64,000 nt of DNA, from IMG/VR virus record IMGVR_UViG_3300010938_000951, positions 1 to 64,000 of that record; one strand, written 5' to 3'. Within the stretch, counting starts at the first letter, position 1, and every line of letters starts with the position of its first letter. The notes under the pieces were generated by a model. It was not told where the DNA came from and ran no database searches. It saw nothing but the letters and a program-made list of their open reading frames with translations. Position numbers and translations under genes: made by a program. Shown piece by piece: positions 41,088 through 58,510 of the stretch.

Positions 41088-41100
41088 AAATTAGGGCCAC

Positions 41101-41128
41101 TTGACGGTTCAATTTTTTGGTATACAAT
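41101..41128 (+). promoter_or_regulatory. sigma70-like promoter of the tRNA / Y-like RNA array
   Basis: TTGACG-N16-TACAAT. Confidence 0.7.
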
Positions 41129-41285: not shown

Positions 41286-41326
41286 AGCCATATATTAGTA
41301 GCGTCCTAGGTACTAATAGGCTATAT

Positions 41327-41403
41327 GGGACAGTAGCTCAGTGTTAGAGCACCGGCCTTTAACTGCCGGGGGTCGCTGGTTCAACTCCATGCCTGTCCCA
41401 CCA
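41327..41403 (+). tRNA. atypical tRNA with 8-nt anticodon loop CTTTAACT (identity undetermined)
   Basis: GGGACAG/CTGTCCC-ACCA; bulged T stem. Confidence 0.65.
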
Positions 41404-41463
41404 AACCGAATGCAAGTAGGATTACATCGGATTAAAAATAATCTTACTAACCTTTCGTCGGTT
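41404..41463 (+). ncRNA. Y-like scaffold RNA 1 (no cargo)
   Basis: AACCGA/TCGGTT and AGTAGGATTA/TAATCTTACT stems; CCGAATG and GGATTACAT motifs. Confidence 0.7.
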
Positions 41464-41465
41464 AT

Positions 41466-41552
41466 CCTGTCTGATTCGATGCCTGGGAGCATCTACCGGC
41501 TGTAACCCGGTCGCCAATGTGCTAAGTGGTTCGACTCCACCAGGCAGGACCA
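41466..41552 (+). tRNA. tRNA with Tyr anticodon (GTA), 8/4 allo-tRNA-like fold
   Basis: CCTGTCTG/CAGGCAGG-ACCA, 4-bp T stem, loop CTGTAAC. Confidence 0.75.
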
Positions 41553-41652
41553 AAACTAAACTGTAATAGGAGCTTCGGCTCTAATATTTGTGACGCACAA
41601 GAGTTAAGCAAGTATTTACAGTCTGTTCAATGACAACTGAATATCTGTTTAT

Positions 41653-41729
41653 CGGGGATTAGCTCAATCTGGTAGAGCGCTAGTTTTGGGTACTAGATGT
41701 TGCACGTTCAAATCGTGTATCCCCGACCA
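41653..41729 (+). tRNA. tRNA-Pro(TGG)
   Basis: cloverleaf, loop TTTGGGT, CCA. Confidence 0.9.
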
Positions 41730-41870
41730 TAGAAGATGGTCCTAATCACAGCCCCACAAGGGCCGCGAGTGGAAAACAATAGCATCATACTAGTTCTGAG
41801 TAAGCGGTATTGGTATCTGGCTTACGCTTTCCTTTTCCACAAGTAGGTTGACCTTTTACCAAATCTTCTA
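41730..41870 (+). ncRNA. unknown rod-like RNA between tRNAs
   Basis: nested TAGAAGAT/ATCTTCTA, GTGGAAAA/TTTTCCAC, GTAAGC/GCTTAC. Confidence 0.55.
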
Positions 41871-41875
41871 GTAAT

Positions 41876-41951
41876 GGCCCTGTCGTCTAATGGATAGGAT
41901 AAGAGACTTTCACCCTCTTGATGTTGGGTTCGATTCCCACCAGGGTCGCCA
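41876..41951 (+). tRNA. tRNA-Glu(TTC)
   Basis: cloverleaf, loop CTTTCAC, GCCA. Confidence 0.88.
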
Positions 41952-42059
41952 TGACGAATGCCCGAAAGGGTTTACATTGTATGCGAAACAATCCGATGGA
42001 GTTCGATTCTCCTTTAAGGCTGGTGCCAGGTAAAACAACTCTTTCATTATTAGTCGTCA
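41952..42059 (+). ncRNA. Y-like scaffold RNA 2 (anticodon arm GCG plus T arm)
   Basis: TGACGA/TCGTCA, GAAAGGGTT/AACTCTTTC; ATTGT-ATGCGAA-ACAAT; GGAG-TTCGATT-CTCC. Confidence 0.75.
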
Positions 42060-42061
42060 AT

Positions 42062-42138
42062 CAGAGCGTGGTGTTTAATGGCTAGCATCCGTGGTCTGGA
42101 ACCATGTGGAGTCAGTTCGAATCTGACCGCTCTGACCA
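42062..42138 (+). tRNA. tRNA-Pro(TGG), C33 variant
   Basis: CAGAGCG/CGCTCTG-ACCA, loop TCTGGAA. Confidence 0.8.
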
Positions 42139-42185
42139 ATGCCAGTATAACTCAAATATAATTTGGTAGATTAGTTTGGGCTGGT

Positions 42186-42321
42186 ACATACCGAATGAGC
42201 TTAAGAGCTACTTAGTCCTAAGGTAGGCAGTCCGCTTACCTGACAATGAATGTAGCTACCTTAAAACAACCGTTATAGTTAGGCTCTAAAGGAATTGTGA
42301 CAAACATTTTTGTCGGTATGT
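42186..42321 (+). ncRNA. Y-like scaffold RNA 3 (divergent)
   Basis: ACATACCGA/TCGGTATGT with CCGAATG and TTTGTCGG; lacks GGATTACAT. Confidence 0.55.
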
Positions 42322-42326
42322 TTTAT

Positions 42327-42403
42327 CAGGGAATGATGTTTAATGGCTAGCATCCTACCTTCGGAGAGTAGAAGTCCCGGTTCGAATCCGGGTTCCCTGA
42401 CCA
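42327..42403 (+). tRNA. tRNA-Pro(CGG)
   Basis: CAGGGAA/TTCCCTG-ACCA, loop TTCGGAG. Confidence 0.85.
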
Positions 42404-42536
42404 TCAGCAAATGCCTGTAGGGATTACATTGCATTTGGAGCACGAGGAGAAGGTCCGATTCCTTCCGGCCCGACCATATCGGGACGAGGTGTTATGGCAG
42501 CACGCGTAAAAATAGTCTCTCAATTCTTGTTGCTGA
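42404..42536 (+). ncRNA. Y-like scaffold RNA 4 (circularly permuted Pro-type tRNA)
   Basis: TCAGCAA/TTGCTGA scaffold; order anticodon, T arm, CGGCCCG-ACCA, CGGGACG, D arm. Confidence 0.8.
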
Positions 42537-42815
42537 ATATCTTCGCATTAGTGTAATAGCTAGTGCGAGGACCATGAGGTCACTCAACTGAAACCTCATC
42601 CATCTAAACGGTCGTCCATTATCGGTTAGAGGAAAATGTAAAGTGGACGTAGCCACAAGGTTCCCAGCGATCGAATGGCTACATTATATTGTTTGAAACT
42701 ATCACTGGGGGCGTAATCGGTTGCGCTTGATATTCCGATGACTAATGGGAGTGAAGATAGTTCCATTGCAGCCCGCAGCTATCACGATATAGTAACTCAG
42801 CGGGATGCGTTTTAT

Positions 42816-42889
42816 TCCGAGGTCGTTCAAAGGCAGGACGGGTCGCTGTTAACGACTCTATGTTGGTTCGATTCCAGCCCTCGGAGCCA
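42816..42889 (+). tRNA. tRNA-Asn(GTT)
   Basis: cloverleaf, loop CTGTTAA. Confidence 0.92.
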
Positions 42890-42892
42890 TAT

Positions 42893-42979
42893 TCTGCGGT
42901 AGCCTAATGGTAAGGCAGGCGGCTGTTAACCGCCCGGTGGTAAAACACTTTCTAGGTTCGAGTCCTAGCTGCAGAGCCA
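42893..42979 (+). tRNA. tRNA-Asn(GTT) with long variable arm
   Basis: loop CTGTTAA; extra arm GGTG-GTAAAA-CACT. Confidence 0.85.
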
Positions 42980-42987
42980 AATAATAC

Positions 42988-43342
42988 GGGGACTGATTAG
43001 ACTGGAATGATCCGTATTAGGTGTTGCGTTTGGTCAGTTCTGCGCAACGACAGGAGTTGTCACCGGAACTTTAACCCGGCCAATCTTCTGAGATGAATGC
43101 GGTAAGGACTACATTACTAATAGCGATCCGCAAGGACAACCCACTCCTTTACAGTACACAAGAGCGGTAGAAAATGCAAACTGAGTACCTGACAAACTTG
43201 ATAACCAGTAAAGCTTCAAGTGTAGGCGGTGAACTACTAAAATTTGCTGCGGACCTTATCGATATCCATAACAGGACTCTTTAAGCAAACCCGCTGTCTT
43301 TACTACCTCTTGTATTGAAATACAAGTTCTTGTCATCAATCT
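42988..43342 (+). ncRNA. unknown ~350-nt structured RNA
   Basis: no ORF; long-range pairings GACAGGAGTTGT/ACAAGTTCTTGTC and ACAAGAG(C)GGTAG/CTACCTCTTGT. Confidence 0.5.
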
Positions 43343-43344
43343 AT

Positions 43345-43419
43345 TCCGCTCTAGTGTAATTAGCACGACGATCCTTTTTCGGGTCGGGGGTCATGGTTCG
43401 AGTCCATGGGGCGGAGCCA
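43345..43419 (+). tRNA. atypical tRNA (T-rich anticodon loop, identity undetermined)
   Basis: TCCGCTC/GGGCGGA-GCCA; arm CGATC-CTTTTTCG-GGTCG. Confidence 0.65.
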
Positions 43420-43500
43420 AAGCGAGCCATAGAGGAACTTCCTTCTACTCATTTATTAACTGAAAACAGTTCTTCTGCTTTCTCGCTAACTTTTACTACT

Positions 43501-43674
43501 ATGGAAAAAATTGCAACATATAATTTGTCTGAATGTATTCATGCCCGCAATGGTTTAAATGAGCCTTTATGTGGGTTTGATCCTAAACAGGCAAAATTAA
43601 CAGACAACATAGAAGAAGTTGACTGTCCTAGTTGCAAGAAATATAAACAATTTCATCGTTCACAACCAATTTAA
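43501..43674 (+). CDS. small Cys/His protein
   Basis: CIH..LCG..VDCPSC. Confidence 0.5.
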   Translation: MEKIATYNLSECIHARNGLNEPLCGFDPKQAKLTDNIEEVDCPSCKKYKQFHRSQPI

Positions 43675-43689
43675 TACCATGAGAAAATT

Positions 43690-44118
43690 ATGTTTACATC
43701 TACCGGAATCTTGCATTATGATCCCGGCTTGGGATCTAAACAATATGACCCTTGGTGGGCTCTTCTAATCTGTGACGATGAAGTGTCTAGGTATTATGCC
43801 TGGTTATTAAAGAGAAATGGAGTAGAAGTTTATCCCAATGATAAAGGATTGTGGGGCACACACGTTTCAGTTTTGAAAGGTCAAATCCCAGAAAATACGA
43901 CTAATTGGGGGAAATACGAAGGCTACGAAGTAGAATTCCATTACAATCATCTTGTCCGTTATGATAACGGTAAACATGCTTGGGTGGATGTATATTCCGA
44001 AGATTTATCGTATATACGTCAAGAATTAGGATTCGAGGCAAAGCCCTGGTATCACTTGACAATAGGAAGATTAGTTAGGCCATATGCAGTAGACTTTACA
44101 AAGTATGGCATAACATGA
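43690..44118 (+). CDS. 2H phosphoesterase-like protein
   Basis: two HxS/T motifs: THVSV and YHLTI. Confidence 0.65.
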   Translation: MFTSTGILHYDPGLGSKQYDPWWALLICDDEVSRYYAWLLKRNGVEVYPNDKGLWGTHVSVLKGQIPENTTNWGKYEGYEVEFHYNHLVRYDNGKHAWVDVYSEDLSYIRQELGFEAKPWYHLTIGRLVRPYAVDFTKYGIT

Positions 44119-44132
44119 TATAACTGCTATAC

Positions 44133-44207
44133 GGTCCCGTCGTTCAATGGTTAGGACAGCACCTTGTCACGGTGCATACGAGGGTTCGATTCCCTTCGGG
44201 ACCGCCA
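44133..44207 (+). tRNA. tRNA-Asp(GTC)
   Basis: cloverleaf, loop TTGTCAC. Confidence 0.92.
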
Positions 44208-44216
44208 GCATATAAT

Positions 44217-44291
44217 GCCTCCGTACGCATCTGGTGAAGCGGGGTGATTGTCAATCATCTGAGGGCGGTTCGATTCCGCTCGGGGGCGCCA
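44217..44291 (+). tRNA. tRNA-Asp(GTC)
   Basis: cloverleaf, loop TTGTCAA. Confidence 0.85.
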
Positions 44292-44362
44292 AGCCAAATG
44301 CCTTGATAGGATTACATTGAACTGTTAATTCAAACCTATATCTTATCTAATTTTTGTTGGCT
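44292..44362 (+). ncRNA. Y-like scaffold RNA 5 (isolated Asn anticodon stem-loop)
   Basis: AGCCAA/TTGGCT, GATAGGAT/ATCTTATC; cargo TTGAA-CTGTTAA-TTCAA. Confidence 0.8.
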
Positions 44363-44366
44363 ACAT

Positions 44367-44445
44367 CGGACAAAAGGTAAGCTGGTGGCATCCGGAAGTC
44401 TTATAAACTTCTCATAGGAGGGTTCGATTCCCTCTTGTCCGACCA
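44367..44445 (+). tRNA. tRNA-Ile(TAT)
   Basis: CGGACAA/TTGTCCG-ACCA, GAAGT-CTTATAA-ACTTC. Confidence 0.8.
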
Positions 44446-44448
44446 TAT

Positions 44449-44525
44449 GGCACGGTAGTCCAAAGGCAGGAGACACCTGACTTAAAATCAGTTCAGTGTG
44501 GGTTCGAATCCCACCCGTGCTACCA
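44449..44525 (+). tRNA. tRNA-Leu(TAA), short variable loop
   Basis: loop CTTAAAA, CCA. Confidence 0.85.
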
Positions 44526-44557
44526 AATGATAATCTTGCGCAAGATTATCAGATAAA

Positions 44558-44702
44558 GACAGAATGCCCCGAAGGAATACATAGAACAGCAATTGAATGA
44601 AAATCAATAGATTGTAGGTGCGAATCCTACCTCTCCCACCAATAATAAGATATATGGGAGGGAAGCTAAATAAAACAAACTTCTTTCAAATCTTTGTCTG
44701 TC
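44558..44702 (+). ncRNA. Y-like scaffold RNA 6 (circularly permuted tRNA-Phe)
   Basis: GACAGA/TCTGTC; ATTGA-ATGAAAA-TCAAT, T arm, CTCTCCC-ACCA, linker, GGGAGGG. Confidence 0.8.
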
Positions 44703-44705
44703 AAT

Positions 44706-44781
44706 GGAGCTTGAGCAAGTGTGGTCATTGCATCGGTCTGAAAAGCCGACAAATCCGGTTCGATCCCGGAAGGCTCCACCA
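44706..44781 (+). tRNA. tRNA-Phe(GAA)
   Basis: loop CTGAAAA, CCA. Confidence 0.85.
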
Positions 44782-44790
44782 ACTACCAAT

Positions 44791-44865
44791 GGTCCTGTAG
44801 CTCAGTGGTAGAGCGCTTGCCTGAAGAGCAGGGCGTCGGGGGTTCAATTCCCTCCGGGACCACCA
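44791..44865 (+). tRNA. tRNA-Phe(GAA)
   Basis: loop CTGAAGA, CCA. Confidence 0.92.
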
Positions 44866-45219
44866 ATGAGAATTGTTCAGAAGCCTTGGGGCCATGAAGA
44901 AATCTGGGCCGAAACTGACAGTTATGTTGGTAAAATCCTAGTAATTAATCCTGGTCACAAACTTTCTCGACAATATCATAATTTCAAAGAAGAAACTTTT
45001 AGAGTACTAGAAGGTATTCTTTATCTTGAAATTGGCAATCCTGGTGATATAGATTTTGCTACTTATACTTTATATGAAGGAAATTCTTTTCATTGCCCGC
45101 CAAAAACAATTCATAGAATGATTTGTTCTACTGGCAATATTCAGGCAGTTAAAGTACTAGAAGTATCGACCAATCATTTGGATGATGTAGTAAGACTAGA
45201 AGATGACTATAAAAGATAA
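44866..45219 (+). CDS. cupin (mannose-6-phosphate isomerase C-terminal-like)
   Basis: KPWGHE, LSRQYH..KEET, IHR, DDVVRLEDDY. Confidence 0.85.
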   Translation: MRIVQKPWGHEEIWAETDSYVGKILVINPGHKLSRQYHNFKEETFRVLEGILYLEIGNPGDIDFATYTLYEGNSFHCPPKTIHRMICSTGNIQAVKVLEVSTNHLDDVVRLEDDYKR

Positions 45220-45394
45220 AATAGTAGAGTTAGAAATTGAAAGACTTTCTTTATTAGAAGTAGTAAGGCAATTTACAATACATGATTGCGATGCAAGAAT
45301 GTGGTGTGAACTAAATGAATTCTTAATAAAGATTGAAGAAAGAGCAGAAGAAATAAATCGTGCCATAGCTCAGTTGGTTAGAGCGCATGTCTGA
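45203..45394 (+). CDS. hypothetical protein overlapping tRNA-Ile
   Basis: short ORF. Confidence 0.4.
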   Translation: MTIKDKIVELEIERLSLLEVVRQFTIHDCDARMWCELNEFLIKIEERAEEINRAIAQLVRAHV

Positions 45395-45435
45395 TACACA
45401 TGAGGTCGCAGGTTCGACTCCCGCTGGCACGACCA
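45359..45435 (+). tRNA. tRNA-Ile(GAT)
   Basis: loop CTGATAC, CCA. Confidence 0.92.
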
Positions 45436-45444
45436 AGATAACAT

Positions 45445-45519
45445 GGGATGTTAGTTCAACGGTGAGAACGGAAGTCCGATAAACTTCAGACAATGGTTCA
45501 ACTCCATTACATCCTACCA
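45445..45519 (+). tRNA. tRNA-Ile(GAT), C33 variant
   Basis: GAAGT-CCGATAA-ACTTC, CCA. Confidence 0.8.
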
Positions 45520-45520
45520 C

Positions 45521-45660
45521 TGAAACAAATGCTCGCAGAGGATTACATCGCATATCCAGCGGGTTACGTGAGTGCGAATCTCACTCTCAGCTCATTATGC
45601 TGAGATCGTCTAGCAGTCTAGGACACCTAAAAAATAGTCTTCTCAATTCTTGTTGTTTCA
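45521..45660 (+). ncRNA. Y-like scaffold RNA 7 (circularly permuted Gly-type tRNA)
   Basis: TGAAACAA/TTGTTTCA; CGC-ATATCCA-GCG, T arm, TCTCAGC/GCTGAGA, D arm. Confidence 0.8.
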
Positions 45661-45667
45661 CAATTAT

Positions 45668-45863
45668 GCCTCCTATCATGGCTGGAAACTGATAGCGATA
45701 CCACCAGGCGGTCCCAGAGGGATGCAGCAGGGGAAGTACAAGAGTATCAAACAGAAGGGACGCCTTCTAGCCTGCTCACATGGTTGGAAACTGTGACGCG
45801 GTCTTGGTCGCGATAGACCAAGTAGTAAAACCGCAAGCCTGCCCACATGGTCGGAAACTGTGG
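45668..45863 (+). repeat. three copies of a hairpin with conserved core CATGGYYGGAAACTG
   Basis: copies at 45668, 45770 and 45837 with co-varying stems. Confidence 0.75.
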
Positions 45864-45866
45864 AAA

Positions 45867-45943
45867 GAATCGTCTAGCTCAATGGTAGAGCTACGTCACT
45901 AGTGACGACGTGGATCTGGGTTCGAATCCCAGGATGATTCCCA
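45867..45943 (+). tRNA. His-like tRNA (G-1:C73) with 9-nt anticodon loop
   Basis: GAATCGTC/GATGATTC-CCA; ACGTC-ACTAGTGAC-GACGT. Confidence 0.7.
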
Positions 45944-45945
45944 GC

Positions 45946-46097
45946 GAAGCAAATGCCCCGAAGGTTTACATTTGAGAAACTGTATTATCGCAAGATAGTC
46001 GTGGGTTCGAATCCCACATCACCGCAAGGTGATTGGCTGAGTGGTCTAAAGCGACAGTGCCGCAAGGCATGCTAACTTTCAAATTTTTTGTTGCTTC
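45946..46097 (+). ncRNA. Y-like scaffold RNA 8 (YrlA-like, permuted class II tRNA)
   Basis: GAAGCAA/TTGCTTC; variable arm, GTGGG-TTCGAAT-CCCAC, acceptor ATCACC-GCAA-GGTGAT, D arm. Confidence 0.85.
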
Positions 46098-46098
46098 A

Positions 46099-46228
46099 TC
46101 TCCCGCTAGTTTAAAACGAAACACCTGTTATAGAGGACGTATACTTCAATCTATGAGGGGTTAGTAGTCCAGAAGAATACCTTCCAGTGAGGAAGGAGAT
46201 GCGAGTGCAAGTCTCGCAAGGGAGACCA
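46099..46228 (+). ncRNA. tRNA-like RNA with ~55-nt insert between D and anticodon arms
   Basis: TCTCCC/GGGAGA-CCA, CCTTC-CAGTGAG-GAAGG, GCGAG-TGCAAGT-CTCGC. Confidence 0.65.
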
Positions 46229-46232
46229 ATTT

Positions 46233-46559
46233 ATGGAAAAGAAAATTCCAACTATGAAGGATCTCAAAGAAGGTCCGCCATTACTCTGTCCAATTTGTGA
46301 CAGACCAAATTATTTTCCATCCGACCATCATATGGTACCAAAGTCTAGGGGCGGTAAAACTACCGAAACTATTTGTGAAGATTGCCATAAAGCAATTCAT
46401 GCGCATTTCACCAATAAAGAATTAGAAGAAACGTATCATACGCCAGAAGCTTTGCTATCTCATGAGGGGTTTGCAAAACAGATTAAATTCCTTTCTAAAC
46501 AGGATCCTGGTGGCCGAACCAAAACGAAAAAGAATAAAGATCGTTTGAGGCGAGAATGA
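46233..46559 (+). CDS. small HNH nuclease-like protein
   Basis: CPIC..HHMVPKSRGG..CEDCHKAIH. Confidence 0.8.
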   Translation: MEKKIPTMKDLKEGPPLLCPICDRPNYFPSDHHMVPKSRGGKTTETICEDCHKAIHAHFTNKELEETYHTPEALLSHEGFAKQIKFLSKQDPGGRTKTKKNKDRLRRE

Positions 46560-46825
46560 GTAGGATTATTGAATTAGTAAAAGCTGGCGCCAAGATTCAA
46601 CAAGAAATTGTTGATGAATTAGTAGTTGATGTCTTAAAAGACGTCGAATTACATCACGAAGAACTTGACATAGCTTTGTCGTTAGATTTTGATAAAATAA
46701 AAGATCCAAATGATAAAGATTTAGCCATTTATCTGGCATTGGATGCTATACGTGATGCGAGAGAAACATTATCTATAATGAAGAAGTTATTAAGAGCCAG
46801 CGAGCTTTTAGATCGTATCGGGTGA
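46556..46825 (+). CDS. hypothetical protein
   Basis: ATGA overlap. Confidence 0.55.
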   Translation: MSRIIELVKAGAKIQQEIVDELVVDVLKDVELHHEELDIALSLDFDKIKDPNDKDLAIYLALDAIRDARETLSIMKKLLRASELLDRIG

Positions 46826-46828
46826 TTT

Positions 46829-47020
46829 ATGGAAGAGAAGAAAGATTTTTGTGAAAAGTGTCAAAAAGAAGTTTGGTCGCTGTATTTACATAAACACTGT
46901 CCTGAATGTGACTCAGATCCAAGCCAGCATGAGCTAAGAAATTATGACATGATGTGGCACGAAGGAGACATTCATTGTGGTAAGTGCGGAACATTTGTTA
47001 GATATTATGACGCCGGCTAA
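46829..47020 (+). CDS. small zinc-finger protein
   Basis: three CxxC pairs. Confidence 0.55.
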   Translation: MEEKKDFCEKCQKEVWSLYLHKHCPECDSDPSQHELRNYDMMWHEGDIHCGKCGTFVRYYDAG

Positions 47021-47086
47021 TCGTTCGATATATCTATTACAACCTGCGTGAGCCCTAGTGGCCACGGTCGAATTAAAGGTGGTAAT

Positions 47087-47674
47087 ATGAATAAAATTCA
47101 AAGATTGCAAATGAGGGGCGTGAGGCTCACGTCCGAGGCAGACTGGGAGAAAGTTATAATTTCCCCTGAAGAGGTAGAAGAAGGCATTAGGCTCGGTACG
47201 CTGCAAGAGATGGAGTCCGCAAAACTGGGATTAAAAGATCGATCATTCTCCGGAGATGAAGGAGATTCGTTAGCAAGGTCAATCGCAGCCAAACAGTTCG
47301 AATTTGCAATTAGACGATGGGGTGGTGGTACTGCTCGCATTGTGCAAATTAATGAGTTCCATGACTTCCCGGACGTTGGGAAAGTGAATGCTCGATATAC
47401 ATTCAACACTGGTTACGGGATGATTATTACCAACCGTGATCAGGGTAAAGTACCAATGATCTTGGGAACGGGTAAATGTCCTGAGTTTTATTTAATGGGA
47501 TGGTTTATTCCAGATTATGCAAAACAAATTATTTTTAAAGTCCACCAAAAACGCAATGAAGATTGTGAAACCGATTTTGGTTTCTTGCAGGAAATGAAAG
47601 ACCACGAATGTTGTCAGCTTAATATGCAAATGCTTTTTCCTATGTGGTCTTTCAATAAAGAACTACTAAAATGA
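47087..47674 (+). CDS. hypothetical protein
   Basis: AAGGTGG RBS before ATG. Confidence 0.65.
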   Translation: MNKIQRLQMRGVRLTSEADWEKVIISPEEVEEGIRLGTLQEMESAKLGLKDRSFSGDEGDSLARSIAAKQFEFAIRRWGGGTARIVQINEFHDFPDVGKVNARYTFNTGYGMIITNRDQGKVPMILGTGKCPEFYLMGWFIPDYAKQIIFKVHQKRNEDCETDFGFLQEMKDHECCQLNMQMLFPMWSFNKELLK

Positions 47675-47796
47675 TATAAGTTTAGGAAGCAAAACAAAGT
47701 ACCTGCTGTTCAAGGGAAAGTTTTGATGAGGAGAGCCGGAACAGGGCAATCCTAAGTTAGGGGTGGACTCAACATCCAACCGCCGCTTCCGCTTAT

Positions 47797-47873
47797 GGGC
47801 TCTTAGTGTTAACGGTAGCACACCTGACTCTTAATCAGGCAAGTCCTCGGTTCGAATCCGGGAGAGCCCACCA
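47797..47873 (+). tRNA. tRNA-Lys(CTT)
   Basis: loop CTCTTAA, CCA. Confidence 0.9.
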
Positions 47874-48104
47874 GATGTATCACAAATGGGAATTCGGGAA
47901 AGGTCCCGCATATAGAATTGGTTTTCAATTCCTACATGTATGGTGGTCATTTACTTCCAAATGTTTTGGAATTAATTTAGGCTCGCGTTATAGAATTTTT
48001 ATTCAGCGCCTTGCTTTTCCAAACTCAAAACCTTATGTTAGGTTTGAGTTTCATCTTCCCAATAAGAAGATGCCAAATCATCCGAAGTGTTACAGTTTTG
48101 AAAT

Positions 48105-48182
48105 GGGTTCGTAGTATAATTGGATTATTACCTCTCCCTCTTAAGGAGCACGATGCGGGTTCGAGTCCCGCTGAACCCACCA
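48105..48182 (+). tRNA. tRNA-Lys(CTT)
   Basis: loop CTCTTAA, CCA. Confidence 0.82.
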
Positions 48183-48195
48183 ATACGAGGTAAGT

Positions 48196-48396
48196 ATGAC
48201 TCGCAATGAAATCAAAGATTTGATCATGGTAATTCTTGGTCAAGCCGATTATGATCTGATGAAAGCATATGATCCAGAAACGGCTGAAGAACCCGAGTAT
48301 GCCGAATCAGAAATGGAAAGATTAATCGATACAGTAGTGGAACATCTCAAAAAGTTAGAAAAGAAAAAGACTAAGAAGGTAAAGAAAAAGAAGTAA
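48196..48396 (+). CDS. hypothetical protein
   Basis: GAGGT RBS. Confidence 0.55.
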   Translation: MTRNEIKDLIMVILGQADYDLMKAYDPETAEEPEYAESEMERLIDTVVEHLKKLEKKKTKKVKKKK

Positions 48397-48397
48397 T

Positions 48398-48471
48398 GGG
48401 TTTATAATTCAATGGCAGAATAGCGGTCTTTTAAACCGTCCATCAGGGTTCGATTCCCTGTGAACCTACCA
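48398..48471 (+). tRNA. tRNA-Lys(TTT)
   Basis: loop CTTTTAA, CCA. Confidence 0.9.
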
Positions 48472-48493
48472 CATGCATGATATATTAAAAGTC

Positions 48494-48949
48494 ATGCCAG
48501 ATCAAAGTTTCAAAGTTTGTAGTATTTGTGGTGAAGATAAGCATATTCACTTGTTTAATAATAGGGCTCGTAGTCCTGATGGTAAACAAGTATTTTGTCG
48601 TCAATGCGGCAAAGAAAAATCTAGAAAATATTATCGCGACAATCAATCACATCATAAAAGTGTAGTCTATTCTAGAAAGATAGATCATATACAAAAATCA
48701 AAAGAGTTTGTTCTTTCATTTTTAAAGGAACATTCTTGTATAGATTGCGGAGAACGAGATCCTGTTGTTCTGGATTTTGATCATGTTAGAGGCGAGAAAT
48801 ATCGCAATATTTCTCAGATGGTACATAGAGGAAATTCTTTAGAGAAGATTAAATTAGAAATAGAGAAATGTGAAGTACGATGTGCTAATTGTCATCGCAG
48901 AAAAACTGCAAAGGAATTAGAGTATTTTACATATATTATGGGGTCATAG
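48494..48949 (+). CDS. HNH endonuclease
   Basis: CSIC/CRQC N-terminal finger; CIDCG..LDFDH..CANCHR. Confidence 0.85.
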   Translation: MPDQSFKVCSICGEDKHIHLFNNRARSPDGKQVFCRQCGKEKSRKYYRDNQSHHKSVVYSRKIDHIQKSKEFVLSFLKEHSCIDCGERDPVVLDFDHVRGEKYRNISQMVHRGNSLEKIKLEIEKCEVRCANCHRRKTAKELEYFTYIMGS

Positions 48950-49015
48950 TGTTAGTGGTAGCATAGTGGACTTTTAATCCATCGGTCTCGGTTCGATTCC
49001 AGAGTGGCCCTACCA
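48940..49015 (+). tRNA. tRNA-Lys(TTT)
   Basis: loop CTTTTAA, CCA. Confidence 0.85.
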
Positions 49016-49036
49016 AGCATAATTAGTAATAGTAAT

Positions 49037-50056
49037 ATGAGAATTATAATGAACCTCATTTTACTTATTGTCTTAATAATATTTATTCCATTTCATGAAT
49101 TAGCTTGTATTAATTCAAATATATCTCCAACAATACAGCAACCTATTCCTTCTAGAATAGAAAAATCTAAAGTGGTTCTAATTACTTTGGATGGTGTAAG
49201 ATGGCAAGAGATTTTCAACGGAACTGATCCTCTTCTCTATCATGGAAAAAAGATATCAGCCCGCGACTTACTTCCCAATATTTATTATCAGTTTGTTGAT
49301 AGGGGCATGGTGGTTGGTAAGGATTCAACATTTGTAGCTACTGGTCCGAACCATATTTCTTTGCCGGGGTATCTTGAAATTATGAGAGGGCATCCATCTT
49401 CTGATTGTCAAGATAATGATTGTGAGCCCCGTCTGCAAGAAAATACTATCGCTGACTTATTTGACAAGTCAGCAATTTTTGCTTCTTGGGATACTATTAG
49501 AAAAACAGTTGGTAAAAATACAGATAAGTTTGTAGTTAACTGTGGCCGTAATTTTCGTTCTACTGGCTGGAAACAAGCCGAACTAGATGATAATCAAACT
49601 TTTCCAGAAGTATGGGGAGATCCAATTTATAGACCAGACGATCTCACAGAGAAAGCTGCTATAGATTATTTACAGTATTATAGCCCAGATTTCTTTTGGG
49701 TTTCTCTGGGGGATACTGATGAGTGGGCTCATTATGGAGACTATGATAAATATTTAGAATCTTTACAACAGGCTGATAAGTTTATAGGTATGGTTGTGGA
49801 GATGGTGAAATCTGGCGAAGATGGTCAAGATTTTACATTTATAGTTACAGCAGATCATGGTCGTGGATTACAATGGCAATCACATGGCTGGGATAGAGAA
49901 TCCGCCAGAGATTGGGTGATGATGGCGGGAAGAAAGATACCGGCACAAGGTTTCGTATCTTATCCTACCAAAAAATCTCTCTCAAATATTTTTCCTACCG
50001 TTAAGCATTTAGTAACTGGAGTTCATACTAAGAATTCTTTATTATCTAAGGATTGA
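49037..50056 (+). CDS. alkaline phosphatase superfamily protein
   Basis: ITLDGVRWQE, SLPGY, DTDEWAH, TADHGRG. Confidence 0.85.
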   Translation: MRIIMNLILLIVLIIFIPFHELACINSNISPTIQQPIPSRIEKSKVVLITLDGVRWQEIFNGTDPLLYHGKKISARDLLPNIYYQFVDRGMVVGKDSTFVATGPNHISLPGYLEIMRGHPSSDCQDNDCEPRLQENTIADLFDKSAIFASWDTIRKTVGKNTDKFVVNCGRNFRSTGWKQAELDDNQTFPEVWGDPIYRPDDLTEKAAIDYLQYYSPDFFWVSLGDTDEWAHYGDYDKYLESLQQADKFIGMVVEMVKSGEDGQDFTFIVTADHGRGLQWQSHGWDRESARDWVMMAGRKIPAQGFVSYPTKKSLSNIFPTVKHLVTGVHTKNSLLSKD

Positions 50057-50057
50057 G

Positions 50058-50606
50058 ATGAAGACTACTATTATCAATTTGTATGGTGGACCTGGTGCAG
50101 GAAAATCCACCTCAGCCTCATATTTGTATTATCTGTTAAAATGTCAACAAGAAAACGTTGAATTAGTTCGTGAATACGTTAAGAATTGGGCATGGGAAAA
50201 CCGACCATTCGGAGTGTATGATGAACTATATTTTCTAGGTAAACAAGTAAGACATGAAAGTATGCTTTTTGGTAAAGTCAAATACATTGTTACTGATGCT
50301 CCGGTGTATATGACAGCCTACTATGCTGATCTTTATTGTAGCAAAGTATTTGCCCAAGGAATTGAGAAAGCTGCTACTGCCTTTTATCAACAAGCTAAAG
50401 ATGATGGACATAATCATGTTCATGTTTATTTAAAACGCTTGCGTCCTTATCAAGCCGAAGGGCGCTATCAATCTGAGCAGGAAGCCTTGTCAGTTGATGA
50501 CGGTGTGCTTAAGATGTTGGCAAGACTGGATGTTCCAGTTATTCATGCCGCTCCTGATGAAGAAGATTTAAAAAGAGTTTTAGAGGATATTCGCAAAGGA
50601 CAATAA
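50058..50606 (+). CDS. NadR-like P-loop kinase/ATPase
   Basis: INLYGGPGAGKST, VREY, IVTD, GRYQ. Confidence 0.8.
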   Translation: MKTTIINLYGGPGAGKSTSASYLYYLLKCQQENVELVREYVKNWAWENRPFGVYDELYFLGKQVRHESMLFGKVKYIVTDAPVYMTAYYADLYCSKVFAQGIEKAATAFYQQAKDDGHNHVHVYLKRLRPYQAEGRYQSEQEALSVDDGVLKMLARLDVPVIHAAPDEEDLKRVLEDIRKGQ

Positions 50607-50607
50607 T

Positions 50608-51021
50608 ATGGTTGAAACTTTCAAAGACCTTGTCGGTGAGGATGTAAAAACTCCTGAAGACATTGATGCTAAACTTAAAGAAAAGCTTGGCATTGGACTT
50701 CAAGAAATGTCATATGCGCTTTGCGATTCATTAAGGCAAAGAGCCGAAGAGGTAGCAGAAGATTGCTATAGTGTTGCTCCTTATGGAGACTATAGTAAAA
50801 TGATTGAAGATCCAGAAGGGGTAGCGAAATTTTTCAGAGATGAAGCTTCAAAGCCCGAGCATTGGAAATTAGAATATCTAGAAGTTCGAAAGAAAGGCGA
50901 TCAGCTCATCGAATTTGTTTTTACTAACTCAGCAGTAGATGATGGCGACATTCTCAAAGGTTTTGTTTTCGTAGGGTTTAGTGGAACCATACGACATGCT
51001 TTTTGTCAGGTTCACACATGA
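50608..51021 (+). CDS. hypothetical protein
   Basis: AAGGA RBS. Confidence 0.6.
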   Translation: MVETFKDLVGEDVKTPEDIDAKLKEKLGIGLQEMSYALCDSLRQRAEEVAEDCYSVAPYGDYSKMIEDPEGVAKFFRDEASKPEHWKLEYLEVRKKGDQLIEFVFTNSAVDDGDILKGFVFVGFSGTIRHAFCQVHT

Positions 51022-51030
51022 AAAAAATCA

Positions 51031-51246
51031 TTGACCATTGAAGAGAGGGTGGATATCCTACTTCGTGAAGGAGTAGATAAACCCAAGAAGTGGGCGGCTG
51101 TTCATGGATATGATGAACCTACTTGGGGAACAAACGATTCTCATGGTTGGGCCAAAGAATATAAAAAGCTTCGTGAACATCATCTTGAAGAAACTAAATT
51201 TCTTTTTGAGGTGATTGGGGAATTAGTAAAGAGAATTAACAAATGA
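51031..51246 (+). CDS. hypothetical protein
   Basis: short ORF with TTG start. Confidence 0.45.
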   Translation: MTIEERVDILLREGVDKPKKWAAVHGYDEPTWGTNDSHGWAKEYKKLREHHLEETKFLFEVIGELVKRINK

Positions 51247-51473
51247 AAAAGATTCTTTTATTATGTTTAGTTTTGTTTGCTTGTGATGAAGAGACTCGTA
51301 AGCAATGGAATCCAACTCCACAAGAGAGTGCGCAAGGAATTCGTTATGTTAAAGATAATCGCACTGGATTATGCTTTGTTTACAATAACATAGGCATGTC
51401 TGCTCAAGGTGGTGGAGGCGATGTATATACTAATGTACCTTGTACTCCAGAAGTAGAGAAGCTAATAAAGTGA
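51243..51473 (+). CDS. small lipoprotein
   Basis: MKKILLLCLVLFAC lipobox. Confidence 0.65.
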   Translation: MKKILLLCLVLFACDEETRKQWNPTPQESAQGIRYVKDNRTGLCFVYNNIGMSAQGGGGDVYTNVPCTPEVEKLIK

Positions 51474-51521
51474 TATATAATAAGTAAGTTGTAAGTCCAA
51501 CTTTTTAAATGGAGAAACAAT

Positions 51522-51623
51522 ATGCTTTCTACTTTGACTTTTGTTATGGTAGCTTGTTTATTCGCAAACCTCGCCTATGAAAAGGGCGGAAAGCTTGTCG
51601 AATTAGTTAAGAGCAAGTTCTAA
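51522..51623 (+). CDS. 33-aa membrane peptide
   Basis: GGAG RBS, hydrophobic, followed by hairpin. Confidence 0.5.
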   Translation: MLSTLTFVMVACLFANLAYEKGGKLVELVKSKF

Positions 51624-51685
51624 TACCTTAATAGAAGGTGGACTTGATTGGGCGCCTTCTATCTAATTAAAAAAATTTGACAGGC

Positions 51686-51713
51686 TTGACGTCTGGTAAT
51701 AAAGTGTTATAAT
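51686..51713 (+). promoter_or_regulatory. sigma70-like promoter
   Basis: TTGACG-N16-TATAAT, 12 nt before tRNA-Ala. Confidence 0.75.
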
Positions 51714-51725
51714 AGTAAGCGTTAT

Positions 51726-51801
51726 GGGGCTGTAGCTCAGTTGGGAGAGCGTCTCGTTTGCACCGAGAAGGTCAGGGGTTTGAATCCCCTCAGCTCCACC
51801 A
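51726..51801 (+). tRNA. tRNA-Ala(TGC)
   Basis: G3:U70, loop TTTGCAC. Confidence 0.93.
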
Positions 51802-51939
51802 TAACTCACTGGCCGGATACGAAACACAATTCGCGAATGTTTCATTATGTTATCCGGTGTCAGATTGAGTAAAAGTTTGGCGATGTACAACTCGCTACAA
51901 GTCCTGGACATGACTTGGATACGGAAACTGTCCGGTAAT

Positions 51940-52015
51940 GGGGCCTTAGCTCAATTGGGAGAGCGTCACGCTGGCAGTGTGAAGGTCGCGGGTTCGACCC
52001 CCGCAGGCTCCACCA
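51940..52015 (+). tRNA. tRNA-Ala(GGC)
   Basis: G3:U70, loop CTGGCAG. Confidence 0.93.
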
Positions 52016-52018
52016 TAT

Positions 52019-52117
52019 ATCCCGCAATTCGATATAATCTCTGCTGGCTGTCTTATCGCGGCTGAACATAGGTTGGCACGGACAGAGAACAAGGTGCAAT
52101 TCCTTGGCGGGATACCA
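52019..52117 (+). ncRNA. tRNA-like RNA (acceptor, T arm and CCA; non-canonical core)
   Basis: ATCCCGC/GCGGGAT-ACCA; CAAGG-TGCAATT-CCTTG; CTCTG/CAGAG encloses ~40 nt. Confidence 0.65.
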
Positions 52118-52122
52118 AATTA

Positions 52123-52323
52123 ATGAGTAAGATTGATTGGTCAAAACACGAGATAGACATGTGGGGCTACTATTGTGAGTCCTGGTGTAAAGCTTGTGAA
52201 AAAGATCGTCGTGTTTGTGAGAAGTGCGGCCTAAACTATGGGGCTGGCCAATGGCACAGTATAGAGCAATGTGCTAAGGTTATTGCCGATGAAAAGGCAA
52301 AACAACTCTCTTTTCCATTCTAA
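52123..52323 (+). CDS. small Cys-rich protein
   Basis: CxxC motifs. Confidence 0.5.
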   Translation: MSKIDWSKHEIDMWGYYCESWCKACEKDRRVCEKCGLNYGAGQWHSIEQCAKVIADEKAKQLSFPF

Positions 52324-52505
52324 TTTTCGAATTGTTGATATAAACTACGCAACTGATTGTATAGACTTATCCGCATGGATCGCTAGTTAAACTGGCGTTA
52401 CAATTCACCTCTTGGAGAAGGGAGGGCTCATCATGAGCGGTAAAAGTAGTAAAGGCATTAGAGACTAATAAGAAAGAAACGTTTTCCCAACGTTTATCAA
52501 TCCAG

Positions 52506-52859
52506 ATGGCCAAGGTCATTAGAACTTGGGCATTCATCATAGGCCAACTAGTTTTTGTGGTTGGCTGGTTTAGTGGACATCACTTCTTCCCACAGCATTT
52601 ACCTTTCGAGGTATTACAAATCTTACTTCTCACTGAAGGTTGCTGTATTGGATCAGTTTTCTTGATGAATCAGCATCGCGAGCAATCATTGGATCGTCGC
52701 ATTGCAATAAATGATTACATTGTTAATTGTCAGATGAGAAATGATGTGAAAGAATTACTCAAAGACGCCGAAAAGAAAAATAATTTTTGGTGTGTAGGTT
52801 GCGGGGAACCGCGATATAAATGTGCTTGCGAAGAGCAAACGCAACTTCGTCAAAGCTAA
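52506..52859 (+). CDS. membrane protein (DUF1003-like)
   Basis: TWAFII..TM..PF..L...LMNQ.R. Confidence 0.5.
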   Translation: MAKVIRTWAFIIGQLVFVVGWFSGHHFFPQHLPFEVLQILLLTEGCCIGSVFLMNQHREQSLDRRIAINDYIVNCQMRNDVKELLKDAEKKNNFWCVGCGEPRYKCACEEQTQLRQS

Positions 52860-52895
52860 AGTTTCTATGAATATTCAAGTATCATAGATACTCAT

Positions 52896-52969
52896 TCAGG
52901 GATCGTCTAATGGTAGGACCGCGGCCTTTGACTCCGCAGATACAGGTTCGAATCCTGAGCCCTGAGCCA
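52896..52969 (+). tRNA. tRNA-Gln(TTG)
   Basis: loop CTTTGAC, GCCA. Confidence 0.85.
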
Positions 52970-52985
52970 GGTCAGTTAAGTATAC

Positions 52986-53059
52986 TGGAGCATCGTCTAA
53001 CGGCAGGACAACGGACTCTGACCCCGTTTATCTAGGTTCGAATCCTAGTGCTCCAGCCA
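52986..53059 (+). tRNA. tRNA-Gln(CTG)
   Basis: loop CTCTGAC, GCCA. Confidence 0.9.
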
Positions 53060-53063
53060 GTAT

Positions 53064-53137
53064 TCTCCGATCGTCTAATGGTAGGACGGGTCGCTCTGAA
53101 CGATCAAATCGAGGTTCGAATCCTCAGCGGAGAACCA
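53064..53137 (+). tRNA. tRNA-Gln(CTG)
   Basis: loop CTCTGAA, ACCA. Confidence 0.82.
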
Positions 53138-53297
53138 GCAACAAATGCCAGCTAGGATTACATAGCTCGCAACTATTTTCCCCGCCAGCCCGAGAGGGCA
53201 AATAAACTTTTATTTTTTATGTTACTAACACGGGGAAATGTTCAAGTCGGTCTGAAAAACCGATAAGGAACTCTTCTTGGCACCTTTAGTTGTTGCT
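53137..53297 (+). ncRNA. Y-like scaffold RNA 9 (two anticodon-like stem-loops)
   Basis: AGCAACAA/TTGTTGCT, GGATTACAT; ATAG-CTCGCAA-CTAT and TCGGT-CTGAAAA-ACCGA. Confidence 0.7.
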
Positions 53298-53303
53298 AAA
53301 TAT

Positions 53304-53404
53304 AGCAGATTGGAGCAGCGGTAGCTCGCCAGGTTCACAATGGGGCTGATGCCCTATAAGGATACCCTGGAGGTCGTGTGGTTCGATTCCCTCATCTGCA
53401 ACCA
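53304..53404 (+). tRNA. initiator-type tRNA-Met with 25-nt insert in the anticodon
   Basis: 1:72 mismatch, TGGAGCAG..GGTAGCTCG D arm; CCAGG-TTCA[25 nt]TAC-CCTGG. Confidence 0.8.
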
Positions 53405-53412
53405 AAACAATC

Positions 53413-53808
53413 ATGAACCCTAAAGAAGTTGGCGAGAAAACAGAAGCCGCCATCCTAAATCATTTCATCCAAAAAGGCGTTTCAGTATCATTGCCGTGGG
53501 GTAATAACCAGCGCTATGATATGATTATTGATGTAGATGGTAAACTTCTTAAAGCACAATGTAAAACTGGCACCTACAAAAAGGGTGTCATTTCTTTTTC
53601 TACTAGCAGCAAAGCTGGCGGAAAAGAACGTAAAGATTATAAGGGTCAAATTGATTGTTTCTTAGTTTATTGTGAACAGCTAAACAAATACTATAAAGTA
53701 GACATTGAGGGTTTACATAATGTAAATGCTATGTCTCTTAGAGTTGATCCTCTTAAAAAGTTTGGTCCCAAGTCTGCCATTAGGTGGGCAAAAGACTATG
53801 AAGTATAA
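53413..53808 (+). CDS. PD-(D/E)XK homing endonuclease, I-Ssp6803I-like
   Basis: GEKTE..G..VSLPWG...RYDMIIDVDGKLLKAQCKT. Confidence 0.85.
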   Translation: MNPKEVGEKTEAAILNHFIQKGVSVSLPWGNNQRYDMIIDVDGKLLKAQCKTGTYKKGVISFSTSSKAGGKERKDYKGQIDCFLVYCEQLNKYYKVDIEGLHNVNAMSLRVDPLKKFGPKSAIRWAKDYEV

Positions 53809-57830: not shown

Positions 57831-58169
57831 GTGAAAGTTATGAGCTTACCTTGGTCACGAGATATGCAATTAGATCCTGGCACATTTGGAGGGTCTCCAG
57901 CATGTCATGTATTAGTTGATATGATGAACAAAAATGTGATTCCTGTTCAGGAAAAACATCGAGTTCTATCATTCATTAGCGGTACTATTTTGCATTTCAA
58001 GGCCATCTCTGCCATCAAAGAAAGAGGTATAAGGGCACGGGTTATGGTGCTTTTGAAAAATGATCTGTTTTCCAGAATAGATCAAATGCCATATCCAGCT
58101 CATTTCAACTCTTATCTGAAGAACGTAGTAAATCACCACTTCAGGCGATACTTAAAAGAAGTAGTCTAG
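57831..58169 (+). CDS. hypothetical protein
   Basis: ORF whose end overlaps RNase P helix P1. Confidence 0.5.
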   Translation: MKVMSLPWSRDMQLDPGTFGGSPACHVLVDMMNKNVIPVQEKHRVLSFISGTILHFKAISAIKERGIRARVMVLLKNDLFSRIDQMPYPAHFNSYLKNVVNHHFRRYLKEVV

Positions 58170-58488
58170 ACAATCGCTCTGCAAGGAGAGGAAAGTCGGA
58201 GCTACATAGGACAGTCTGCTGGCTAACGGCCAGGCGTAGTAATACGACGGAAAGTGCAACAGAAAATAAACCGCCCGCAAGGGTAAGGGTGAAATGGTGA
58301 GGTAAGAGCTTACCGCATGTTTGGCGACAAATATGGCAAGGCAAACCCCAGATGTAGCAAGCTAAACAGAGAGTGACTTGTCCGGTCAATACTCTCGGGT
58401 TAGTGCTGGAGCCGTCAAGTAATTGTCGGCCAAGATTAATGATTGTCTCGATTTATAGACAGAACTCCGCTTATAGGGCTACTTCTTT
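58155..58488 (+). ncRNA. rnpB: RNase P RNA (bacterial type A)
   Basis: P1 AAGAAGTAGTC/GGCTACTTCTT; GAGGAAAGTCGGAGC, GGAAAGTGCAACAGAAA, GGGTGAAA..GGTAAGAGC, GGCAAACCCC, ACAGAACTCCGCTTA with compensatory P4. Confidence 0.95.
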
Positions 58489-58510
58489 TAAGTTCTTTTA
58501 AGGAATTATT

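Follow-up and report, generated by a model that had tools for sequence, protein, structure and literature searches.

Ten probable Y RNAs set among the tRNA genes of a phage that encodes Ro60

Introduction

What are the repeated, structured elements that lie between the tRNA genes of IMG/VR virus record IMGVR_UViG_3300010938_000951, and what might this huge phage do with so many of them? The record totals 266,899 bp; we analyzed its first 64 kb, termed here 'the window' (G+C = 40.6%). A tRNA island of ~30 tRNAs occupies ~41.2–53.4 kb of its + strand, the strand on which every window feature described below is found, and the same strand carries a gene for the protein Ro60 (33529..35115). Y RNAs are thought to be the tethers and gates that decide what Ro60 does. 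Most of the bacteria and phages studied so far have just one or two of them, which limits how far the function of their variable module can be tested. A first-pass annotation of the window, made from the sequence alone, described nine Y-RNA-like scaffolds between 41404 and 53297, carrying interchangeable tRNA cargo. We conclude that this region contains ten elements, and that they are probably phage-encoded Y RNAs of the YrlA/YrlB type, the non-coding partners of the phage's own Ro60. If so, ten paralogues side by side amount to a natural experiment on what the variable module is for.

Phages with a Ro60 and Y RNAs of their own are known: 22 were described in 2014 (PMC4201824), and in 2025 the Ro60 of Thermus phage phiLo was reported to bind two phage Y RNAs, and the host PNPase, in vitro (PMC12135203). 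The systems characterized to date have one or two Y RNAs (PMC4201824, PMC12135203). YrlA RNAs are defined by a 5' GNCGAAN0-1G motif, a YUAY motif at the start of the V (variable) region, and V, T, acceptor-stem and D arms (Chen et al. 2014, PMC4201824). What is new here is the number of copies, their placement among tRNAs and the range of their cargo; the literature that we searched nowhere reports arrays of Y RNAs within the tRNA islands of phages, which is not proof that no such report exists.

A shared scaffold

The ten copies, which we call E1 to E10, span 41404–53297. They share a terminal stem of 5–9 bp, an internal loop with AAUGC on its 5' side and UUUUGU on its 3' side, a second stem that covaries, and a junction, UUACAU, beyond which the cargo differs: there may be none, or hairpins, or tRNA-like domains, or 150–200 nt of RNA that is not tRNA-like. 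All nine starts named in the first-pass annotation, and the stem halves quoted for them, were confirmed on the sequence, as was the match of GACGAATG at 41953 to the 5' motif of the Ro60-binding helix; the count itself fell one short, a motif scan having found a tenth element at 43091–43338 (E10). The motif GGWWTACAT, attributed to eight elements, does occur eight times on the + strand of the island, against ~2 expected from dinucleotide shuffles for the whole 64 kb on both strands. Its first part, GG(A/U)(U/A)U, belongs to a second stem, as had been proposed, but its partner is the distant 3' A(A/U)(A/U)CU (RNAfold, comparative pairing) rather than the other side of a small local hairpin, and UACAU is a mostly unpaired junction (RNAfold, alignment). 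The local hairpin following AAUG (CCCGAAAGGG), which is how this part was first read, was discarded because comparative pairing favors the long-range second stem.

A covariance model, suggested as a check by the earlier annotation, was built from eight short members of the family, then refined, and applied without filters to both strands of the entire window. Eight of the elements are recovered at E <= 0.0012, with the scores given for each below; beyond these, E10 receives 18 bits and E3 13 bits, which is at noise level. The scan returned no other match, and none on the – strand. For listing family members, loose scripts combining motif and stem proved too noisy, and covariance models were used in their place. 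Single-sequence folding energies are only modestly better than those of shuffles (z from –0.3 to –3.2) and are not decisive; the case for these putative structured RNAs is comparative.

Correspondence with the YrlA consensus

The Rfam consensus for YrlA is cggCgaAUGC...CUA...cUuGucG, and its parts follow one another in a set order: the outer stem cggCga, the loop AUGCu, a 7-bp second stem, CUA, a short stem, the T arm, an acceptor-like hairpin, the D arm, the 3' strand of the second stem, the loop aAaAcUuG and the closing strand ucGccg. Part for part, the scaffold of the window follows this order. It had been suggested that the scaffold goes beyond canonical YrlA; we do not retain this, since the two are collinear position for position and the UUAC of the scaffold is the YUAY motif (PMC4201824). 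UUAC is found in 82–100% of 91 family sequences, downstream of the first strand of the second stem, and aligns with the CUA of the Rfam consensus. At the paired ends, the GNCGAAN0-1G motif is present in exact form in E2 (GACGAAUG). Across the family the 5' consensus is nnn(c)(g)A-AUGC (C 65%, G 74%, A/A/U/G 98–100%), the first G and the CG being relaxed in many copies.

The permuted tRNA-like domain that had been ascribed to some of the elements is complete, with T arm, closed acceptor-like stem and D arm, in E4, E7 and E8; it is partial in E2 (T arm only) and E6 (no D hairpin). E1, E3, E5, E9 and E10 have none, and so are not YrlA RNAs in the strict sense. Comparison with the Rfam models, also proposed earlier, gave no match at the gathering thresholds. 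The YrlA model yields sub-threshold matches, extending over the full length of E4 and E7; the Y_RNA model yields no match in 41000–54000 at E <= 10, and the YrlB model, scanned over the island at E <= 10, matches neither E1 nor E5.

Conservation and covariation

Relatives were obtained in two ways, via the Ro60 protein and via an open reading frame (ORF) of the island. Those fetched in this manner have the same RNA family, always on the + strand; all six with adequate flank carry elements, and the available sequence of close relatives holds 5–10 copies each. The elements fall into three length classes, 56–71 nt (about half), 100–166 nt and 196–275 nt, and cargo is entirely absent from about half of the family.

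Comparison of these sequences supports the scaffold strongly. In an alignment of 43 distinct sequences, the terminal helix is 95.7% paired, with double-sided changes in 5/6 pairs and a covariation score of 0.534 (0.194 when shuffled). In a larger alignment, of 91 distinct sequences from ~30 contigs, pairing of the terminal helix is 96.9%, both sides have changed in 14/16 pairs overall, and the score is 0.647 against 0.212 shuffled, a value reached by 0/500 shuffles. Sliding the partners by 1–3 columns abolishes the signal. The covariation earlier claimed for the outer stem is thus upheld, each of its six pairs having changed in a compensatory way. The unpaired motifs of the 91 sequences, meanwhile, are nearly invariant: A-AUGC 97–100%, UAC 100%, and the U, G and U of UUUUGU 98–100%.

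These features bear on the notion that the copies are selfish repeats, in the form of miniature mobile elements bounded by terminal inverted repeats, or else tRNA pseudogenes amassed in the island as they decay. Copies do turn over: E3 occurs only in this phage, E8 and E9 are truncated in the closest relative, L010, and there has been tandem duplication in the locus L006. Against this, the terminal stems have kept their pairing although their sequences differ from copy to copy, the reverse of what conserved transposon ends would show; the single-stranded motifs do not vary even among phages that share only 40–50% identity in Ro60; and the strand is always that of Ro60. We give this explanation almost no credence.

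Association with Ro60

The presumed protein partner, encoded at 33529..35115, matches Pfam TROVE (4e-10) and vWA_Ro60 (8e-15), and so has both the TROVE ring and the C-terminal vWA domain of a Ro60. Residues ~26–513 align, full-length, with the solved structures 9KOP (phage phiLo), 2NVO (Rsr of D. radiodurans) and 9NEN (RO60). Megablast of window 33–45 kb against GenBank phages found no near-identical phage. Two scans of the viral collection with Ro60 alignments returned at least 100 contigs, most of them 100–512 kb long. In 77 new Ro60 loci the covariance model gave 129 matches (63 + 66) at E <= 0.01, distributed over 46 loci. Every one of the 129 is on the strand of Ro60, and many adjoin the gene directly, within 0.5 kb. 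Among phages whose Ro60 is 41–55% identical, the matches stand beside the gene: L158 and L148 have three in tandem just downstream of it, L188 has three just upstream, and L180 has seven on the downstream side.

The association was also approached from the RNA side. A pattern scan for the RNA alone, with a stem filter, found at least 11 new contigs with genuine short elements; Ro60 is present in 7 of the 11 listed, and none was shown to lack it. The tie between Y-RNA-like RNAs and phage Ro60, for which co-occurrence with TROVE genes had been put forward as a test, is strong: the same-strand association extends across dozens of phage loci, with a TROVE/vWA_Ro60 protein as presumed partner.

The cultured Myxococcus phage Mx1 (L014, OR576727.2), whose Ro60 is 52% identical, has two elements between tRNAs, one of which matches Rfam YrlA over its full length (32 bits). 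The Mx1 Y RNAs are unannotated in the record. One, at 8554–8655 (29 bits), overlaps the hypothetical protein WNM70101.1 (8556–8678), and this coding sequence is, for that reason, probably a miscall.

The elements and their cargo

The short copies are scaffold and little else. E1 (41404..41463; 60 nt; 63 bits, E 3e-12), a putative short Y RNA, is scaffold only; there is no gap (0 nt) between it and the CCA of the preceding tRNA, tRNA-Tyr follows after 6 nt, and its lowest-energy fold is the scaffold. E5 (44292..44362; 71 nt; 63.5 bits), which lies between tRNA-Asp (0 nt) and tRNA-Ile (4 nt), is likewise a putative short Y RNA, carrying a single hairpin of 5 bp that is capped by the 7-nt loop CUGUUAA; its L010 orthologue keeps the stem and has the loop CCUUUAC. 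E2 (41952..42059; 54 bits), between tRNA-Glu (0 nt) and tRNA-Pro (2 nt), is longer, and its cargo is made up of three hairpins: one with the 7-nt loop AUGCGAA, one resembling a T arm, and a small one. It has orthologues in L010, L007, L005 and L011.

Three elements are of YrlA type. E4 (42404..42536; 47 bits) comprises a V hairpin, a T arm, an acceptor-like hairpin with A-CCA (the ACCA lying in the hairpin loop) and a D arm. It aligns with Rfam YrlA end to end, positions 1–114 in register, at 17.2 bits, an extra hairpin appearing as an insertion. E7 (45521..45660; 44 bits) has a V hairpin, a T arm, a closed 7-bp acceptor-like hairpin and a D arm, and matches YrlA over its full length at 16.6 bits; in its L010 orthologue the acceptor stem covaries and ACCA is in the loop. 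E8 (45946..46097; 46 bits) has a T arm, an acceptor-like hairpin, a D arm and two GCAA-capped hairpins. Its T/acceptor/D block makes a partial match, to YrlA positions 26–82, at 26.3 bits.

E6 (44558..44702; 29 bits, E 3e-4) is a permuted cloverleaf on the scaffold. Its cargo consists of a GAA anticodon-like arm, a T arm, a 7-bp acceptor stem with A-CCA, a 14-nt loop and the 5' strand, with no D hairpin; the scaffold occupies the place of the tRNA D loop. The L010 orthologue is identical except for one base of the 3' internal loop (U to C). Could E6 be a real tRNA? We rejected this: the permuted cargo does fold as a cloverleaf with ACCA, but ARAGORN calls no tRNA, and the unpermuted Rfam tRNA match (44571–44638) scores 23.6 bits, below the 29-bit threshold.

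A broader form of the same idea is that the long copies (E4, E6 and their relatives) are permuted or split tRNA genes that yield chargeable tRNAs, the scaffold merely joining the halves. An encoded A-CCA after a 7-bp acceptor-like stem, followed by a loop and then the 5' strand, occurs in E4, E6 and many relatives, so that discriminator base and CCA stand where they should, and the E6 cargo can be numbered throughout as a cloverleaf whose anticodon loop has GAA. We nonetheless think this extremely unlikely. Quite apart from ARAGORN's verdict, E6 lacks the conserved D-loop bases as well as the D hairpin; in E4, E7 and E8 no anticodon arm occupies its canonical place; CCA is missing from E7 and E8 as found in the window; and two tRNA-Phe(GAA) genes are already right beside E6.

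In the remaining elements the cargo is of other kinds. E9 (53137..53297; 26 bits, E 0.0012) has non-tRNA-like cargo that includes a near-copy of a tRNA-Phe anticodon arm, a hairpin with 16/17 identity to that of the phage tRNA-Phe at 44706; its L010 orthologue is cut short by a tRNA. Directly after E9 stands a tRNA-Met(CAT) with a predicted 25-nt intron (53304–53404; ARAGORN -i; Rfam tRNA 39.8 bits), and the same tRNA-Met(CAT) also follows the shortened orthologue in L010. E10 (43091..43338), identified by motif scan and by its orthologues, is the scaffold plus ~200 nt of cargo, conserved but unlike a tRNA; its sequence is marked by GAUGAAUGC...GACUACAU...UCAUC. Orthologues in five relatives score 29–36 bits, and their alignment, with a covarying second stem and conserved blocks of cargo, indicates that the E10 type is a conserved subfamily. 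An element of this type in L007 (19276–19550) has a second AUGAAUGCCCGAAAGGAUUCCAU motif nested in its cargo, as if one scaffold had been inserted in another. E3 (42186..42321; 13 bits, E 1.7) is a divergent, probable member with a 9-bp terminal stem, AAUG, UUUUUGU and a different interior. Its fold has a z-score of –3.2; an orthologue is absent from L010, where there is no room for one.

The first-pass annotation saw in such cargo a set of Ro60-docked mimics of tRNAs and anticodon arms: either decoys, drawing off the host's anticodon nucleases or toxins that target tRNAs, or else tRNA precursors in protected form. Several details are of the kind that a decoy might have: the E9 hairpin just mentioned, the E5 loop CUGUUAA, which is that of tRNA-Asn, the GAA loop of E6 in its complete cloverleaf, and the fact that in most hairpins preceding the T arm the loop is 7 nt long and has U as its second base. 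The phage, moreover, invests heavily in tRNA supply and repair (~30 tRNAs, an aminoacyl-tRNA synthetase, an RNA ligase and an RNase P RNA). What weakens the idea is that these anticodon-like loops differ between close relatives. The E2 loop AUGCGAA is replaced in close relatives by CCUAGAA or by 10-nt loops, that of E5 has changed in L010, E4 orthologues show UUG, UAG, UAU or no hairpin, and the E9 mimic is lost from the nearest relative, where the E8 orthologue is truncated too. Add to this the cargo-free half of the family, and the fact that in YrlA nomenclature the hairpin is the variable arm and not an anticodon arm (PMC4201824), and a decoy function appears rather improbable.

Placement among tRNAs and possible release

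Seven elements start within 3 nt of a tRNA CCA, as had been counted before (offsets 0, 0, 0, 0, 1, 2 and –1), and in seven cases 2–8 nt separate the end of an element from the tRNA that follows it. Ahead of the island there is one strong promoter-like site, TTGACG-16-TACAAT (41101..41128; consensus scan, 10/12 positions), upstream of the first tRNA; this is a consensus match only, and such sites are not enriched in the region. Abutment to tRNA ends, together with the promoter-like site, suggests that tRNA processing could release the Y RNAs, a possibility already raised in the first-pass annotation and supported by the geometry on both sides. The Y RNAs would be transcribed inside long tRNA precursors. 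The cut that matures the CCA end of the upstream tRNA would then create the 5' end of the Y RNA, and an RNase P cut at the next tRNA, possibly with the phage's own RNase P RNA, its 3' end.

The RNase P RNA (58158..58489) is a full-length, class A molecule (Rfam RF00010, 279.9 bits), kept in L010 (19996–20327, 270.8 bits), and is a candidate for the cutter that may act at the tRNA 5' ends 3' of the Y RNAs. No RNase P protein subunit was found, and the literature searched gave no report of such a phage-encoded RNA. In copies with the 7-bp acceptor-like stem and A-CCA, a second RNase P cut might produce a two-piece RNA with a tRNA-like CCA end. This second cut is plausible because the acceptor geometry is that of the YrlA RNA of M. 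smegmatis, which is cut by RNase P and then gains CCA (PMC4201824). Placement between tRNAs and a phage RNase P RNA suggest, more generally, that phages use tRNA processing to make RNAs other than tRNAs.

The same geometry could be read the other way around, with the elements as cis-acting spacers of the tRNA precursor that guide cleavage by RNase P or RNase E, or protect neighboring tRNAs, and with Ro60 uninvolved. The tight abutment on both sides in the window, and a single strong promoter-like site ahead of the island, are what such spacers might show. In L006, however, four almost identical 142-bp units stand in tandem (14560–15110), each with its own promoter (TTGATA-17-TATAAA) and a 59–65 nt Y RNA, and with no flanking tRNA. 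From these stand-alone copies we infer that the RNA is a gene in its own right, and not just a spacer between tRNAs. Dozens of more distant phages, furthermore, carry the RNAs beside Ro60 and not in tRNA arrays, and the scaffold equals the Ro60-binding module of YrlA. A purely cis-acting role is accordingly very unlikely in our judgment. Just upstream of the four L006 units there is also a long (GATGGT)n repeat (14420–14510).

Weighing the Y RNA interpretation

If the ten elements are Y RNAs, Ro60 would dock on the terminal stem and the AAUGC/UUUUGU loop, as it does in characterized Y RNAs, and the variable inner module would decide what the protein is tethered to, or gated against (e.g. PNPase-like exoribonucleases or tRNA-handling enzymes). 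Ten RNAs could in this way confer ten specificities on one Ro60 ring during infection. The comparisons indicate that Y RNAs of this subclade have moved into the tRNA island and expanded there to a varied set of ten.

A number of observations count against identifying the elements as Y RNAs, or against some of them. None reaches the Rfam gathering scores, which are 69 bits for YrlA (RF02553) and 97 bits for YrlB (RF02565): the best YrlA score in the window is 26.3 bits, with 32 in Mx1, and the best for YrlB is 27 bits (E 0.34; L005:15272–15345, a full-model alignment). Only 60% of the Ro60 loci gave a match within 10 kb, a figure that is a lower bound because AT-rich members had served to train the model and the default filters were on, and 4 of the 11 contigs found by RNA were not checkable for Ro60. 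The window elements lie 6.3–18 kb from Ro60, on the same strand, as against within 4 kb in the 2014 survey. E3, the weakest, scores at noise level and lacks both the second stem and UUACAU; E10 is weak in this genome. And the orthologues of E8 and E9 have decayed in L010, so that individual copies appear to be dispensable. Set against the collinear scaffold, the covariation and the constant strand relationship with Ro60, these points leave us fairly confident in the Y RNA interpretation.

Beyond this lies a bolder proposal, which we offer tentatively and consider unlikely: that in this clade of huge phages one Ro60 ring is served by interchangeable Y RNA adaptors, and that some of these, if RNase P cuts them at the encoded acceptor stem and CCA, would become two-piece mimics of tRNAs or anticodon arms, which would steer Ro60 and its exonuclease to particular tRNAs or soak up host defence nucleases that target tRNAs. 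If it were true, the cargo would be a programmable specificity module, evolving fast under pressure from the host.

Whatever the cargo does, the family is large, with at least 100 contigs of mostly huge phages in addition to cultured Mx1. Because it escapes the current Rfam models, the RNAs go unannotated, and a new covariance model would correct many phage annotations.

Neighboring genes and other features

Genes for RNA-handling proteins are scattered through the window: a class II (Asp/Asn/Lys-type) aminoacyl-tRNA synthetase (8822–10441), a SpoU-family RNA methyltransferase (15520–16134) and an RNA ligase (59730–60401). There is also a microbial PARG (36920–37780). The ORF directly 3' of Ro60 (35152–36828, 558 aa) was considered as a partner and rejected: it belongs to no Pfam or PHROGs family and has no homologue in 36 related Ro60 loci, from which it appears to be an orphan insertion.

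Within the island, two tRNAs (41327–41403 and 43345–43419) have 8-nt anticodon loops (ARAGORN 'ttaa' and 'tttt'; Rfam 53 and 33 bits) and may be suppressor or frameshift-type tRNAs. Three further stretches, the first two of them non-coding, are conserved as well. After E4, ~280 nt (42537–42815) are kept in L010 (5173–5452) and partly in L005; they match nothing in Rfam, and may be another structured RNA. After E7, the stretch 45661–45867 forms three hairpins whose stems differ (UAUCA/UCACA/CCACA) and whose 11-nt loop, UGGYUGGAAAC, is constant; it is 86% identical to L010 8497–8730, again with no Rfam match. Finally, ~130 nt following E8 (46098–46232) contain a T-arm-like hairpin and have 5' and 3' ends able to form an acceptor-like stem with CCA after it; this stretch is conserved in L010 and called by no tRNA finder. 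In the tRNA island of L008, a sub-threshold match to skipping-rope RNA is present at 18684–18764 (RF02924; 30.4 bits against 36.7, E 0.0044).

Comparison with known systems

Release from between tRNAs would recall mitochondrial tRNA punctuation and the mascRNA/MALAT1 locus, in that flanking tRNA structures could set the ends of another RNA via RNase P and 3'-end processing. The phage case differs in being drawn from geometry only, and in that its product would be a Y RNA. The Y RNAs of metazoans are alike in size, in their Ro60-bound paired ends, in their pyrimidine-rich internal loop and in existing as several paralogues with different loops. They are transcribed from individual polymerase III genes, however, whereas the phage RNAs are linked to tRNAs and are without the bulged-C helix.

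Closer at hand is phage phiLo (PMC12135203), which also pairs a phage Ro60 with Y RNA-like genes of its own, Yrl1 and Yrl2, of stem-bulge-stem form with a CGAA motif. These two RNAs lie directly upstream of Ro60 and have no tRNA-island placement, and the phiLo Ro60 is ~25% identical to that of the window. YrlB/Yrn2 of Salmonella, M. smegmatis and D. radiodurans resembles E1, E5 and about half of the family, all of them 56–71 nt stem-loop-stem RNAs with an A/U-rich apical loop, and there, too, a short RNA accompanies a longer, tRNA-like Y RNA in one genome. The short phage copies differ from it in having the full YrlA-type scaffold (AAUGC, UUACAU), like their long siblings.

It is to YrlA itself that the phage elements are most fully comparable. 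Both have a terminal stem ending in CGA, an AUGC loop, a second stem, a YUAY junction, a 3' ...UuG loop and the strand of Ro60, and both have an optional V hairpin, a T arm, a closed acceptor-like stem with the possible look of an RNase P substrate, and a D arm. The phage elements stand apart in scoring 17–32 bits where 69 are required, and in numbering ten per genome instead of one or two; in lying between tRNAs, 6–18 kb from Ro60; and in encoding A-CCA, in several copies, where in YrlA it is added. E6 keeps an anticodon-like arm, and several other copies bear a partial tRNA-like domain, none, or a large cargo of an unrelated kind.

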